A DNA stretch of 63,924 nt, counting the filler, from Lenisia limosa (lineage: Eukaryota; Protista; Breviatea): assembly GCA_001655205.1 (NCBI GenBank). It is 13 parts of 13 records of this genome, joined end to end, with 100 filler letters (N's around TTAATTAATTAA, not from the genome) between each part and the next. Parts side by side here need not be neighbours in the genome. Positions count along the whole stretch, not along the records: positions 42,004 to 48,751 come from LPNZ01008601.1; 12 more parts are not named here. The stretch is one strand, 5' to 3'. A model generated the notes under the pieces. The model worked only from the letters and a program-made list of their open reading frames with translations. It searched no databases and was not told the origin of the DNA. The translations under genes were made by a program, and so were the position numbers. Within the stretch, counting starts at the first letter, position 1. Each line of letters starts with the position of its first letter. Shown one piece after another: positions 41,904 through 48,751 of this stretch.

Positions 41904-42011
41904 NNNNNNNNNNNNNNNNNNNNNNNNNNNNNNNNNNNNNNNNNNNNTTAATTAATTAANNNNNNNNNNNNNNNNNNNNNNNNNNNNNNNNNNNNNNNNN
42001 NNNCCCCCCCC

Positions 42012-44145
42012 AGGTTGTATTCTACAGCGAATCGGGCTGCTCACGCGCACCTGCTTTGGTGATTGGTTAGGGGGGACACGTGAACTTTTCCAAAATTGAA
42101 GAGCATAATGTGGGATTTTCTGATACAAAAGTGAACACTTCTGCTTTCAGTCCCTTTTAGTTTTCATATTTTTTTATTTCAATGAATATTATTATTAGTA
42201 CGATATCTATACATCTCATATACCGTTCTTCTTTTTTTTTCTGTTGTGGAATTGTCATCTACACCACACGAAGCGCTATTTCAAGAGAGTCGCACGGATA
42301 GTTGGTATATTGTTTTTTCCTTTTTTTAAAAACATGACTTGATATTGGAAAATTTGAAATTAAAGATACATTTCAGAGAGAGAGAGCGAGAGGTAGTACT
42401 CTACATCTAATAATATTCAAAATTTGTAATTTTTAAATTGCTCAAATGACGAAGAGGTTAATGTATTATCGATCTCTTTATTGATTATATTCGACGATAT
42501 ATCCTCCAAATAATTCCGGTTCCGGTCATTGTAAAAAAAAACGTTTCCCGGAGGAACCGGAACCGAGAGTAAACCTTTATTAAAAATAACTGATAATATC
42601 ATCGCAATAACAATGAATCCCAAGATAAGAAAAAAATGCCACCGTTCCAGTTGCGAAGACGTCGTTTAGGGGCCGTCAGTCTGGTGGAGTTGTGTAATGC
42701 AGCTTCGACAGCGTCAACCAAGAGACCACTCTTAAGATTTGCACTAACTGGTACATCAGCGCCACATCAAAATCATCGAACGGAAATATCATCTCCTAGA
42801 ATAGTACATTTACAATTTATTTGAAATCAAGTAAATTCACGATTCGCTTACACTCTTGAGCTGTGGTCATTAGCTCGGGGCTCTCTCCCTGTGCGGACAG
42901 TAGAACCTGATGATAATAAGGGACGACTCACAATTTGAAACGTGTGGGTTTGTTGATAAAATCGTGAATTACCGCAAAAGCCTACTCTTGAGAACAAGCT
43001 GCCAAACCATTTTTCAGTAGTCATAGTGAAACGAACCCTGTTCTCGATTACCTCTAGCGTATTTGATTGAGCTTTGGAATTTGCCAGTTGCCCCACAGCT
43101 CCTTTACCCCCTGTTGCTTTTCATCTTTTCCTTTGCTTTTCATCTTTTCCTTTGCTTTTCATCTTTTCCTTTGCTTTTCCTTTGCTTTTATATTTTGCTT
43201 TGCTTTTCCTTTGCTTTTCCTTTGTTTTTCCTTTGCTTTTCCTTTGTTCTTCTTTAGTTTTTTTATCTTATATCGCCTTTCATTTGATGTCCTGTTGGTT
43301 ACAAAAGCTCTCTTATTTTGGCTCAACCTAATCGTAGCATCTTTTTTGTTGCTTAAGAGTTCTGTTCTTTGATTAAAAACGTTACATATAATACTATGAA
43401 TCAACAGGTTTTTATTATTATTAATATTTTTGTTTTGCGTTACGTTTCAATATTTCACCTTCCTTTTTTTTTCGCTCCATACCATCTTTTTCATTCCCCC
43501 TCCCCCCAGCATACCTGATGAGTGTGTACGGTTTGCGGTTCTTCGAGTCTTTGGTGATGGTAACGGCCGTGCGTCCTATTGTCAGAATCCACCCGGCCCT
43601 CTCTGCCTTGCTCTCAGGTCTCGACAGAGAGGTACGCAGCCTTTTTGTCTTGTTATTGCGATTTGATCAAAGTAGCTCTTACCTTCCTCCACCCTTCTTA
43701 CATGGAGCCTTCCTCCACCCTTCTTACGTGGAACCTATTATTTTCTGTGTCACCACCCAGTTGTTTGCTATGCGGTCTTGGTGTCTTCCGCTTCAGCAGG
43801 TGAGCTCGATTGTGATGACAATAGCAATTCAATTCAGGCATTTTATATTACCTTTGTTCAGTTTTACCCATAACCCTATTTGCTGCCCTACCCCACACAT
43901 AATCAGCCTATTCCTTGCTTACCCGCAGTATCAATGTCCGTGCGGTTCTTGTAGTATATCCCTGGCGCCGGAGTCCTTTACAGCGTTCCACCGAACTCCT
44001 GCGGCAAATGCTGGTAGAAATCCGTTCCCATGTTGCTGTAACGTCAGGCCTGGAGACAACTGCCCTGCACCAAGCTGCAAAGTGGGCGGTGTTTCTCATC
44101 AATCACTATCTCTACACGAAAAACAGGCTGCACCGTATTTTGTGA
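42012..44145 (+). CDS. Probable spliced gene, exon frames unresolved
   Basis: C-run acceptors on + at ~42011 and ~43509, a pyrimidine-rich intron, and a terminal open segment INVRAVLVVYPWRRSPLQ...LHRIL*. Alternative frames and strands cannot be excluded. Confidence 0.25.
43113..43250 (+). repeat. Pyrimidine-rich minisatellite (TTTGCTTTTCC / TTTGCTTTTCATCTTTTCC units)
   Basis: Directly visible tandem units; they explain the spurious F/L/S-rich ORFs here. Confidence 0.85.
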
Positions 44146-44259
44146 AGATTTTTCACATCGAAAAGACTAAGTATAAAATGATGAGCTACTAAGACAATTC
44201 ACGTTTAGCTACATAGGCGGATGGTGACTAAGACAATTCACGTTTAGCTACATAGGCGG

Positions 44260-45760
44260 ATGGTGAGCTTACTGTTTCAGACTGGTTTGGACACAGTCAA
44301 AGCCCGTCATGGCATTGTTGACGACGCGATTTGGTGGGGCTATATGCTACCAAGGTTGGAGTGGAGAGGGGCGTGATTGATCACTAAACAATTCGATCTG
44401 AATTATTATCTGCATTGTTGGCCCATACGGATTAACACTATTATATGATATATATGAATTCCTTGACCACCCAGTGTGGTGTTTGGCCTCCCGTCGGCTG
44501 CAGAGAAAGTCCCAATGAATCACTCCGATATGGACCCGAACGGCAAGCCATCAGTGGGGGAGGGGGGCTTACACCAACTATATAATATAGATAGTATATG
44601 ATATATGATATCTACAGTGACCGGGATTAGTCTTATACTATCATACATATAGTATCATATATCATAGAGATGAGAAATAAAGCAAGGTTGTGTCTGGCCG
44701 AAGCCGTCCACACCATCTACATATATAATATTAATTCACCCATCAGCCCCTATTCAACGCGCCTTATCTAAAATAAAAAATCTCACACGGTTCAGAACTT
44801 ACGGCGCCGAATGTCCATCGTCGAAAAGAACTGGCAGGTTGGTCGTAGTGTTGGGATTTGGGTAGGACAGAATCAACAATTTACCATTTCACTATTGCGC
44901 AATTCATATAATTTTAGGTCTGGCGATGCTCCATATGTCAGGCGTGGACCCATGCCACGCGCACGCGAGGAGAGAAGGNNNNNNNNNNNNNNNNNNNNNN
45001 NNNNNNNNNNNNNNNNNNNNNNNNNNNNNNNNNNNNNNNNNNNNNNNNNNNNNNNNNNNNNNNNNNNNNNNNNNNNNNNNNNNNNNNNNNNNNNNNNNNN
45101 NNNNNNNNNNNNNNNNNNNNNNNNNTTAGGGTTTTCGGAATAAAACGTCCTCGTTATTTCCTGCTGATTCCCTACCCCCAGATGTTAGCCGTTGTTACAA
45201 ACTTCCCAGTGGGGTACGTAGCTTCTGCTTATGACAACGACAACAAATCATCAGCATCCGTGGGCATTTGTTAATTTCAGAGTTCATCCGTCACATTCCT
45301 CTTTTCATTTTGACCCCCCCCCCCTCACATTCTATGCAGAAGTGTGACTTTTTTTTTGTTTTAACCCCGTGTGTTTCGCTGCTTTTTAGCCAACTTTGTT
45401 GATTATGATGGGGGGTTCGCTTTAGCCAACTTTGTTGATTATGATGGGGGGTTTGCTTTATATTCTTTTTATGTACGCTGGAGTGATGGGATGCGGTGCT
45501 TCAGAAGAGACTGACCTGGGCTTTGTTTGTTGTTATTAACCCTTGTGTGTTTTCAGCCAACAGAGTTGATTTTGGGCTTTTTTTTTTTCATAATACCCTC
45601 CCTCCCCCAGGTGCCCCGGCCGCGGATGACAGGATACCACCCGACAGACGTGTTTGTGGACCCGTCGGAACTGATCGGAAGACATCGCTCATTCCAGGCG
45701 GCCGTGGCCCAGGCCGGGCTACCCGCTGATGGTGTTGAATTGTGGGTGTTGACCCCATAA
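44260..45760 (+). CDS. Small multi-exon protein with a CxxC motif (possibly Mss4/GFA-like zinc-binding fold)
   Basis: ATG|gtgag at 44260. Exons TGLDTVKARHGIVDDAI, VWRCSICQAWTHATRT and last exon VPRPRMTGYHPTDVFVDPSELIG...ELWVLTP* after the acceptor at 45610. Confidence 0.42.
45473..45610 (+). repeat. Family Y intron-end repeat, near full-length copy ending at the 3' splice site
   Basis: GTACGCTGGAGTGATGGGATGCGG...CTGGGCTTTGTTTGTTGTTATTAACCCTTGTGTGTTTTCAGCCAACAGAGTTGATTTTGGGCTTTT...CCCCCAG. Confidence 0.85.
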
Positions 45761-46416
45761 GGCCGTTATGTTGTCGATATTTATCGCAAATGAGGGCTTC
45801 GGATGTATTATACTGATTGATATCAACCTTTTGTTGTGTCTCACTCTTTTTAGATAAGCACCTCGCATTGTATTTATATTGTTTAGTTATGGTTGGCTGT
45901 ATTTAAGTTTTCTTGTTACTAAGTCTGTGTTTAGAAGATTGTTTCGATGTATCAGTGTATGTTGTTTGTAAATGAGGTGACTCTATTGTTTGTGCTGAAC
46001 TGTCATCTAGATAATCATACCATCATTATACCATCATACCCATATTTCTGCAGCAATATATCTGTAGCTTACTAGCTTACCGGCTTCCTGCAAGCTTCCC
46101 GCAACTTCCTTGCAACTTCCCGTCAGCTTTCTGTGAATTTTTTTGCCTAGATTGCAATTAAAAATGGAAAACCTAAGATCAGATTCTAATATTAATATTC
46201 CGCGACCGGACCTTGAAAAATAGATTTGTAGAAATTTGTAACAGATTTTTAACGACCATTTAAGACCTACTACTACTGATATAGTATTATATTGAGGTAA
46301 CCCAGAACACCATACCTCAGTTTGGACTTTTGAGTTTCACATATTTCACTAGACTGGACTCTGATACACCGTTTTCCACTCGTTATAGCATATCCTTCAT
46401 CTTTTAAGACTCAGAA

Positions 46417-48751
46417 ATGTCATTTGGTAGGAGCAAACGGCCAACAGTCATGATTGACCCTATAGGATATCAAACCAGTGGCGACTTCGATGCCGTTCTC
46501 GCCCAGGTCGGTCATTCTACGCATATATATTGTAAATACGGACTGAATTTGCTCTTCTTACATCTCCCCCGGTCTGTTAACACATTACAGAGCAGATCAA
46601 CCGTGTCACAATTGAACACGTTGGTTGGCAGCCTCAAGAAGAGTGTTGATGTTCTTGGAACGGAAAGAGACACACAAGACTTTAGACGGAAGCTGTAAGG
46701 GGGACACGTTCACAGATCTCATGGTGAGTGAACACACAACTGTGCCTTTTTCAGTTAAGGTGATTTTCACTGCCCCCCCCCTTTTTTTTTTTTGTTCTCA
46801 TTAATGTCTGTTTTTTTAATATATATTGTTGTTCTGTTATATCTCATTATATTATGGCTTTCAACATCCCGCACCCAACTGGATAAAAGGGTTTTATGAG
46901 TTCTGTTCATTGTCTTATTTTTCATATGATATATACTCCACATTACTTTCTTTTCCTCCTGAGGAAGACAGCAAACTAAACAGGGAATGGATATCTTTAG
47001 TTTTTCAAACCCTCACTTTTATCTTGCGTGTCTTATAAATGCCCATTCACCGCCTTTTGATGCTCTAGTTTTGTTTTGTTTTTGTTTTGATTTTTAATGT
47101 GGATTATTCACCTTTTTGTACATATTAATCATCGAAATTTCCTTCTCTTTACTCTCCCAATAATTCTCTTCGTTTTACATTGCACTTTCGTATTATTCGG
47201 TTCGTTATTAGTACCTTTACACCAATATTCTTCACCGAAATTCCCTTCGCTTTACCCCCCCCCCCAGTAATGCTCTGACGATGAAAGCGAAAGGCAAGGC
47301 CAAGGAGGCAGGGGAGGCAGTCAAGGCCGTTCAGAGCCATCCCTCCGGTCCGGATGAGAAGGTTTGAGGGACTGTTGTATACCACATAGAGAAAACTGTT
47401 GTATGCCGCATAGAGAAAGCTATTGTAAGCGGTCATTATGAGTAAATTGTTATTAAATAACTGTTAACATTTACCGCCACCCAAGGCATGAGATCTGTAT
47501 TGTATTTCTTTCAAGTGTTTCGTGTGTGTTGTATAGAGAGTATTTTTGTTTTATTAATAACACGTTTTCCTTTACGATGTTGTTTTTTCAGCAGCATTTG
47601 ACCCCGCAGCGCAACCATCGAATGCAAGGAGACAGGCTGCGGAAGGACTTCGAAACAGTCCTTCACCGCTTCCAAGAAATCACATCAACTAGCCAGGAGA
47701 AGATCCAGCAATAGTGCGTTGGGAATAGCAGCAACACTATGATAGATTTATCAAGAGAAGTGTGAGGCCTCGCATTACCCTTTGCGTCTGGATGATAGGG
47801 TTTACTTTGCCCAACGGAAGAAATACGACCAAATCCGATCTTTTAGGTATCAAAGTAGTATTACTTTATTTCTTTTTTTCATTTGTTCGCACAATAAATG
47901 GGGAAATGGACCTATTTAGTCTTGTCATTTCACGCCTTAGCCTCCCAAAAGCCTCCGCAAATGACCTTCAGCTTGATGATGATGATGGTGACGTCATGGA
48001 AGAGTGGGGGGGGGAGTAAAATAGGAAAATTTATGCAACAACAAAAAAACCAAATCAACTCTGCAATGGCGGTGCAAGAGGGGGGAGGGAGAATTTAAAC
48101 TCCCGAATATAATGATGTTTGTCGTCAAGTAGAGGTCTTAGTCCGGCCCGTTATTTACGACCTAGGGAGAGGAGGCGTAAGGAGCAGCGCCGTGCCGATC
48201 TCGACCGTAGACAGTGGGTTGAAGCTGTTACTGACCTATTGATCTGATGTTTCTGCTTTCCTTATGCCGACATTTTTTGCTTTATAATACGGCTTCCTCA
48301 CCATGCAGTCAGCAACAGTCCATGGTGGAGGCTGACCTCGAGCAGAACGAAGCGTTAATCGCCGGTAGGCCTCTCGATTGTTGCGGTTTTATGGGCTGCT
48401 GCTTTTTTGTTGTTTTTTTGGGGGGGTTTTTTTTTNNNNNNNNNNNNNNNNNNNNNNNNNNNNNNNNNNNNNNNNNNNNNNNNNNNNNNNNNNNNNNNNN
48501 NNNNNNNNNNNNNNNNNNNNNNNNNNNNNNNNNNNNNNNNNNNNNNNNNNNNNNNNNNNNNNNNNNNNCCGAAAAAACTGCCTGTTTTCTTCTTCTTGTT
48601 TATAATAAAATTCGGCTGCACCTTCATTGCCCCATTCGTTTGATTCAACACCTTCATTGCCCCCCCCCACCCAGAACGTGAGGAGGGCATTGCACAAATT
48701 GACACTACAATCCATGAGATCAATGACATCTTCAAGGACTTGGCTACTATG
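46417..48751 (+). CDS. STX7: Syntaxin-7/12 (Pep12/Vam3-like) endosomal Qa-SNARE (3' partial)
   Basis: Exons join in phase: SLKKSVDVLGTERDTQDFRRKL, LRKDFETVLHRFQEI, and the SNARE motif EREEGIAQIDTTIHEINDIFKDLATM. Confidence 0.85.

Follow-up and report, generated by a model that had tools for sequence, protein, structure and literature searches.

A dispersed, high-copy repeat that supplies intron acceptors in Lenisia limosa

Introduction

What kind of DNA recurs in the introns of unrelated genes and stops exactly where the next exon begins? The question is raised by positions 45473–45610 of the window (the whole 63,924-nt stretch of Lenisia limosa DNA that was analysed). The initial annotation had assigned this segment to a dispersed repeat, family Y, that provides the 3′ splice site of many introns, and had suggested that it is an acceptor module only, which either targets C-tracts at intron ends or is the surviving half of an old introner. 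The origin and spread of new introns are still debated; the documented introners are mostly cut-and-paste transposons, which produce an entire intron in a single step.

Sequences and searches

Splicing was read from contigs of RNA run X2 and from an independent cDNA contig (L001), and copy depth from a DNA run of the same study as X2. The piece analysed (42004–48751) does not contain the other Y copies listed in the initial annotation. The profile search that had been proposed for family Y was run, with a profile built from a 16-copy alignment, on 8 contigs (L002–L009, 54 kb) of an independent ENA assembly of this genome. These contigs were entered via ORFs that read through Y, so the density and strand figures below are biased upward. 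RNA evidence covers four Y copies, and exon contact of the remaining copies was judged by GC content (yardsticks: verified exons 0.54, introns 0.40, background 0.41). ORF length after the AG failed to separate exons from background, since exons in this genome are short.

The focal copy ends at an acceptor used in RNA

The piece that holds the focal copy (42004–48751) is eukaryotic nuclear DNA with a GC content of ~40 % and carries two genes on the + strand (Table 1); the relatives found for the second, a syntaxin, were transcriptome-derived only. The RNA contigs and L001 delimit 17 introns in the piece, all GT-AG; two others lie shortly outside it. Of the 17 RNA-verified introns, 15 carry a YTNAY motif whose A is 7–20 nt from the 3′ end, and the organism seems to need a branch site close to the AG.

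The focal copy reads GTACGCTGGAGTGATGGG...CAGCCAACAGAGTTGATTTTGGGC...CATAATAC CCCTCCCTCCCCC AG, its last letters being given as CATAATACCCTCCCTCCCCCAG, and matches the consensus of the initial annotation. An X2 contig joins 45259 to 45611 and thereby skips a 351-nt GT..AG intron; because of this joint, the AG that closes Y is the acceptor in use, which bears out the claim that Y supplies the 3′ splice site. The copy's own GTACGC is unused as a donor because the donor GTGGGC lies at 45260, 213 nt upstream of Y, again as had been supposed. C-runs ahead of an AG are common genome-wide.

Summed DNA contig depth was ~95,000 over 45459–45569 vs ~37 in flanking single-copy DNA (~2,600×), and fell from ~95,000 to ~50 right at the 5′ edge of Y. 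This depth therefore indicates thousands of Y copies at ≥95 % identity in this intron-rich protist genome, with a sharp 5′ boundary.

Table 1. Coordinates and layout of the repeats, splicing signals and host genes. Numbers without a contig label are window positions; a slash marks a junction, and Y followed by a number gives the profile position at which Y starts.
Feature	Position	Strand	Details
Gene 1, C-terminal part, dual-specificity-phosphatase-like protein	exons 42014 to ~45968	+	
Gene 2, syntaxin-7-like t-SNARE	starts 46417	+	
Upstream exon, dual-specificity-phosphatase-like host gene	45182–45259	+	RNA contig, translation
Composite 351-nt intron	45260–45610	+	donor GTGGGC; two decayed Y fragments, then full Y
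Weak Y fragment, profile positions 106–150	45262–45323	+	nhmmer E=0.6 in 11 kb; collinear with the other pieces
Weak Y fragment, profile positions 59–106	45352–45460	+	nhmmer E=0.03; also delimited as 45352–45406; includes 36-nt tandem duplication 45385–45460
Full family Y copy	45473–45610	+	starts GTACGC; small tail deletion; profile match E=1e-35
Candidate branch-site-like motif CATAATAC	45589–45596	+	A at 45595, 15 nt from intron end; by sequence reading
C-rich tract CCCTCCCTCCCCC	45596–45608	+	by sequence reading
Acceptor AG used in RNA	45609–45610	+	RNA contig joint 45259 to 45611
Downstream exon	45611–45741	+	begins right after the AG of Y; RNA contigs
Family W copy	47186–47267	+	tail CACCGAAATTCCCTTCGCTTTAC + C11 + AG; ends at RNA-verified acceptor 47267
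Antisense Y fragment, profile positions 93–152	48004–48064	-	RNA-verified; splicing confirmed by cDNA L001
GT+G-run donor sites	42066, 44554, 44978, 46695, 48004; L002 5557		~55 sites in 54 kb (L002–L009)
L010 intron			G14/Y7...C14 CGCAG
L009 intron			G12/Y17...W...C12 AG
L008 intron			G9/Y94..branch/Y4...C12 AG
L011 intron			G12/Y70...C14 GCAG
Tandem duplications	44188–44265, 45385–45460, 43681–43736, 47371–47427; L010 1–214; L003 2–187		
MITE-like repeats	44560–44720; L002 5600–5790; L004 840–960, 2090–2250, 2400–2650		

Family Y is widespread, 3′-anchored and variably truncated at its 5′ end

The 16-copy alignment reproduced the earlier consensus and the profile search returned 43 copies or fragments in the 54 kb, confirming that the dispersed repeat is real; at least 8 more were present in another 12 kb. 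The density was ~0.65 per kb after dropping the copy that led to each locus, a figure still biased upward, and 40 of the 43 copies lay on the strand of the ORF that oriented each of these ORF-chosen loci. An exhaustive protein search found a translation of Y in 517 ORF cluster representatives, which are false ORF calls, yet evidence of wide spread. Identity to the consensus averaged 0.89, with some copies at 0.96–0.98.

The consensus of ~150 nt runs (G)TACGCTGGAGTGATGGGATGCGGTGCTGCAGAAGCGACTGGCCTGGGC, a T/G-rich spacer, ATCAACCCTCGTGTGTTGTCAGCCAACAGAGTTGATTTTGGGC, a T-run, GTTTCATAAATTTTCCAATTTTAC, a C-run of 5–15 and AG. Judged from these motifs, Y looks like a whole mini-intron, with GTACGC at its start, the conserved core CAGCCAACAGAGTTGATTTTGGGC, a TTTTAC branch-like motif, a C-run and AG. 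The opening GTACGC is a consensus-like donor, identical as a hexamer to the real donor at 43632. This donor, together with several introns that consist wholly of GT+G-run, Y and C-run+AG (below), does not fit the proposal of an acceptor module only.

The 3′ end was retained in 35 of 41 copies (profile position ≥135), whereas the 5′ end was reached in only 21 of 43. Starts in the profile ranged from 2 to 105 (≤13 in 21 copies, 14–60 in 10 and 72–105 in 12), the last cluster representing a short form of Y that comprises its final ~55 nt; full-length 5′ ends are common to at least seven copies. As a side observation, the first ~52 nt of Y (GTTGGAGTGAYGGGATGCGG...GGGCTTTGTTT) also occur as a mini-array repeated 2–4 times, which is one form of intronic tandem duplication.

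Neither the 16-copy alignment nor the fold revealed terminal inverted repeats within or between the ends of Y beyond homopolymer runs, and a candidate pairing of CTGGAGTGA at the 5′ end with CTGGGGGAGTAA (reverse complement of the 3′ end) was weighed and found no support in the alignment. ARAGORN detected no tRNA head in Y, Rfam returned no match better than E=6, the consensus fold contained no conserved structure, and a 21-mer taken from the consensus had no match among the JGI metagenome contigs scanned. The initial annotation had pointed to target-site duplications and an autonomous partner as features to look for. No direct repeats or target-site duplications were seen at the Y flanks, and no reverse-transcriptase ORF, autonomous partner or empty site was noted in the fetched loci.

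A second family, W, shares the tail design of Y and its behaviour, including W-W and Y-W stacking. Eight copies were present in the 54 kb, and the tail of the family, CATCGAAATTTCCTTCGYTTTAC + C-run + AG, is related to that of Y. The copy at 47186–47267 ends an intron whose RNA joint runs from 46694 to 47268, and its DNA depth was 10,858. The same intron also holds, at 47104–47185, one or two incomplete tail modules stacked ahead of this copy.

Y is strongly, but not always, the last item before an exon

An AG lay ≤25 nt from the profile end in 30 of 34 Y tails, and 23 of those 30 were followed by DNA of exon-like GC content (≥0.47). For a first set of 30 copies, GC was 0.50 in the 45 nt after the AG vs 0.41 in the 45 nt before the 5′ end of Y. 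Among the RNA-verified copies, the focal one provides the acceptor at 45610 directly, a second (L002 5815–5969) has its acceptor 20 nt past the C-run, and a third (L002 6174–6323) is internal, 105 nt from the AG. The verified antisense fragment sits at the opposite end of its intron: its C-run end abuts the upstream syntaxin exon, so that the + strand reads exon, then GT G9 AGTAAAATAGG, and the fragment is the donor of intron 48004–48165. A leftover G-rich stretch (48081–48092) lies beyond it. Y is strongly, but not always, the last item before an exon.

Stranded 3′ modules and stacked units lie upstream of Y

The 5′ halves of Y-ended introns had been described as unrelated. This stands in so far as they contain unrelated palindromic MITEs, but they are often older Y-type units. 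The first 213 nt of the focal intron hold two weak, collinear, same-strand Y fragments, and the 5′ halves are therefore not simply unrelated. The first of these fragments ends in TTTTGAC + C10 without an AG, a stranded 3′ module that is also apparent by eye.

At the junctions, the DNA just upstream of Y is in many cases the stranded 3′ module of an earlier unit or a decayed Y copy. Ahead of a full-length 5′ end there is usually the tail of another unit, which breaks off at the branch-like motif or just past it (CCCATTTTAC/GTACGC, GATTTTTTAC/GTATGC, CCAATTTT/GTACGC, TTTTAC/ATGCTGG and TTTTAC/GTACGC). Truncated and near-full copies often follow a branch-like motif and a variable C-run (0–15 C) without an AG, as in CATTAC CCCTCCCCCACCCCC/GCTG and CTTAC TCCTTCCCTCC/G, in the junctions C11A/GCTGGAG and TTTAC C8/GTGATGG from ORF translations, and at L011 8862, where an old branch-like TTTCAC stands immediately ahead of a near-full Y. 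In a strict automated test, a stranded 3′ module lay directly upstream of 11 of 28 copies (39 %) vs 15.6 % of random positions (p=0.002), and the fraction was higher by eye. The suggested targeting of C-tracts at intron ends is likely on this evidence.

A proposed element that lands in the 3′ end of resident introns

Acceptor use at 45610, the copy number, the 3′-anchoring with variable 5′ truncation and the stranded modules upstream are direct observations. To explain them we lean, on balance, towards reading Y as a non-autonomous mobile element, anchored at its 3′ end, whose insertions fall between branch site and C-run in introns already in place and so replace the 3′ module of those introns. 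A new copy would insert in the sense direction, downstream of the branch site and upstream of the C-run/AG of an existing intron; such introns would often already end in a Y or W unit. The inserted Y would bring its own branch site near the AG, leaving the old branch site and part of the C-run, without an AG, stranded upstream, and the spliceosome would then join the upstream donor to the last unit's AG, using that unit's branch site. Copying may be primed at the homopolymer run, either as reverse transcription of an intron-derived RNA with a C-run at its 3′ end or as repair synthesis templated by another intron end; such priming would also account for G-runs at 5′ junctions.

Insertion of this kind accounts for the exact contact with the acceptor, the AG-less stranded modules and their variable leftover C's, and likewise for the stacking of units and the 5′ truncation. 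It also accounts for the antisense copy inside a donor G-run, with its leftover G-rich stretch at 48081–48092.

Whole introns of G-run, Y and C-run

Several introns in L008–L011 appear, in their DNA, to consist entirely of GT+G-run, Y and C-run+AG (Table 1), with paired G-run/C-run lengths that are alike (14/14, 12/14, 12/12, 9/12 and 13/14). Y may therefore also create introns: going by these layouts, either the family itself or a carrier element that ends in homopolymers seems able to make whole ones. Invasion and creation of introns are not mutually exclusive.

Taken further, Y could be the interior of a classical intron-creating transposon with true ends GT G(n) ... C(n) AG. Insertion of that transposon into an exon would yield an entire new intron, Y copies with different 5′ starts would have arisen by internal deletion, and composite introns would be the product of later stacking and local duplication. 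We regard this as unlikely, though it is the main rival. Whole introns in which a G-run adjoins Y at start 7, 17, 70 or 94 and a C-run of similar length precedes the AG fit intron creation at least as well as they fit the invasion of old introns, and GT+G-run donors abound (~55 sites in 54 kb). In L008, moreover, an exon end with its GTACNTGGGG donor is triplicated and a full Y begins ≤10 nt away; another layout in that contig has a full Y on the 5′ side of the intron and older pieces on its 3′ side. A MITE origin has been proposed for the inverted G-/C-rich intron ends of some diplonemids (PMC12621601), which we count in favour of a transposon here. However, no sequence is conserved past the G-run, the exon flanks carry no visible target-site duplication, and G-runs also open many introns that are free of Y. 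Full-length 5′ ends of Y usually follow a stranded tail rather than a G-run, and the young focal copy has no adjoining G-run.

Independently of Y, GT followed by a run of 5–14 G opens many introns of this genome, and a run of 5–15 C followed by AG closes many; the architecture is a general feature of the genome and is not tied to Y. Where both runs occur in one intron they are of similar length and therefore could pair, bringing the splice sites together.

Could Y and W be copies of intron RNA?

Tandem units are joined at branch motif/GTACGC (L005 8649/8651, L004 6522/6524, L004 1712 and L008 1233/1235), with a C-run and AG present only past the last unit, and a W-W junction in L009 is built likewise. 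It strikes us as improbable that Y and W arose by copying of excised intron RNA and reached the 3′ ends of further introns by RNA-mediated insertion, with C/G-run priming or with the spliceosome as catalyst; if true, the genome would hold thousands of fossils of RNA-level intron transposition, and the 5′ G-runs would be untemplated cDNA tailing.

A more specific version, to which we give little credence, treats them as retro-copies whose unit extends from the consensus 5′ splice site to the branch site, like the circular part of a lariat, and which spread either through reverse splicing linked to the spliceosome or through reverse transcription with priming at the 3′ ends of introns, and then recombination beside resident introns. 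The tandem junctions, the placement of C-run and AG only after the last unit, the donor-like GTACGC opening (as in the real donor at 43632) and the 5′ truncation with an intact 3′ end all agree with it. Read-through of a lariat should, however, exclude the C after the branch A that the junctions retain, often with several further C's; an antisense Y copy at a donor is likewise unexpected, and the frequent local tandem duplications could make the arrays. The lariat-like reading is attractive but weak. Origin of the branch/GTACGC junction from trimmed intron circles was also considered and set aside, as it conflicts with the published tails: trimmed circles in yeast retain 15–20 nt of tail (PMC10996645).

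The two remaining readings are very improbable. If Y were not itself mobile, and the similarity at intron 3′ ends reflected strong splicing signals plus ectopic gene conversion of intron interiors seeded at G/C homopolymers, the generality of branch motif and C-run in this genome's introns and the repeat boundaries at C-run/AG would be explained. Against this, thousands of copies in unrelated genes share ~100 nt of conserved sequence that is no splicing signal, and gene conversion cannot seed new sites because it requires pre-existing homology. The earlier suggestion that Y is what survives, at the 3′ side, of a longer and older introner with a decayed 5′ half fits the absence of the 5′ part in many copies, but hardly the full-length 5′ ends shared by several copies, the drop in depth from ~95,000 to ~50 (single-copy depth upstream of the focal GTACGC) or a young focal copy that is ≥95 % identical to many short DNA contigs of other copies and has a sharp boundary at GTACGC.

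Comparison with known systems

It is already established that some introners bring one splice site and recruit the second (10.1101/2020.10.14.339549), which makes the statement in the initial annotation that introners usually supply both sites too simple; an element that supplies one site is therefore no novelty as such. The introners of Aureococcus, Symbiodinium and Polarella have the 3′ splice site at their end, and a target-site duplication provides the recruited 5′ site (10.1101/2020.10.14.339549). Like these elements, Y is short, non-coding, high-copy, intronic and mostly in one orientation, and ends exactly at the 3′ splice site. It occurs as many similar copies in introns of unrelated genes, and carries at least one splice site (AG 45609–45610). 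In the known introners, however, the element and the duplicated target form the whole intron, with inverted repeats and target-site duplications of 3–8 nt, whereas the focal Y is only the last 138 nt of a 351-nt intron, Y lacks inverted repeats and target-site duplications, and 5′-truncated copies are stacked behind stranded 3′ modules. The boundaries of Y are not both boundaries of the focal intron; in the G-run/Y/C-run introns of L008–L011 they possibly are, as far as the DNA alone indicates. Nor does Y show the terminal inverted repeats or the target-site duplication that mark TIR DNA transposons and MITEs.

Intact 3′ ends with variable 5′ truncation, together with non-coding sequence, very high copy number and the lack of inverted repeats, are shared with SINE-like non-LTR retroposons. 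Unlike SINEs, Y has no tRNA, 7SL or 5S head, its tail is a C-run rather than A-rich, and neither a partner LINE nor a clear target-site duplication was seen. Introns of diplonemids and euglenids, with a C-rich pyrimidine tract and inverted G/C-rich ends (PMC12621601), resemble the GT+G-run ... C-run+AG introns described here, but that report concerns splice-site logos rather than a dispersed 150-bp family, and all 17 verified introns here are GT-AG.

Fungal stwintrons (PMC12403724) likewise involve an intron-like unit nested in the splicing signals of another intron, with similar copies at many sites. They are removed in two consecutive splicing steps, whereas the focal intron leaves in a single excision from the outer donor to the AG of Y. 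Y is not a stwintron, because RNA shows one excision (45260–45610) and removal of Y alone would leave the outer intron without an AG.

The general kind, an introner-like element, is already known. What looks different here is that Y typically makes up no more than the last part of a longer intron, has neither inverted repeats nor target-site duplications, is truncated at the 5′ end and appears to target the interval between branch site and C-run, so that stranded 3′ modules are left behind. In the introner literature we found no description of an element that targets this interval of resident introns; a catalogue of 1,093 introner families in 201 species, which includes non-LTR-/retroelement-derived and unknown-mechanism categories (PMC12130899), might include this genome.

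Repeated replacement of the branch site and acceptor in existing introns would be a second way for selfish DNA to inhabit introns, and would explain turnover of intron 3′ ends with the intron position unchanged. With thousands of copies, some 96–98 % identical to the consensus, Y offers a concrete system in which to distinguish RNA- from DNA-mediated intron mobility. In genome annotation, Y predicts acceptors and also causes false read-through ORF calls.

Other features of the piece

Perfect or near-perfect tandem duplications of 24–52 nt are frequent in introns (Table 1). Several palindromic MITE-like families with clear inverted ends, distinct from Y, also occur inside introns (e.g. GGCTTCACTTCGGTTCGAAAAA... 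and GGCGCATCGACTTGGGATTCCC...). The 1,444-nt intron 42066–43509, delimited by an RNA joint, contains an 11/19-nt microsatellite-like array at 43114–43252 and AT-rich DNA.

The N-runs at 44979–45125 and 48437–48568 are assembly gaps that the independent contig L002 fills. Behind the first lie the 5′ end of an intron (GTGGGGGTGG...) and a branch-plus-C-run module in antisense, and the second is a T/G-rich low-complexity stretch.

Just past the start codon of the syntaxin gene lies a 39-nt GT-AG intron (46427–46465) that is removed in both the RNA contig and the cDNA. Its length is a multiple of three and it is stop-free, so that retention would add 13 residues. In the other host gene, the phosphatase signature (42014–42065, 43510–43631) reads FYSESGCSRA vs the HCxxGxxR of dual-specificity phosphatases; the catalytic cysteine is apparently replaced, and the product may therefore be a pseudophosphatase.
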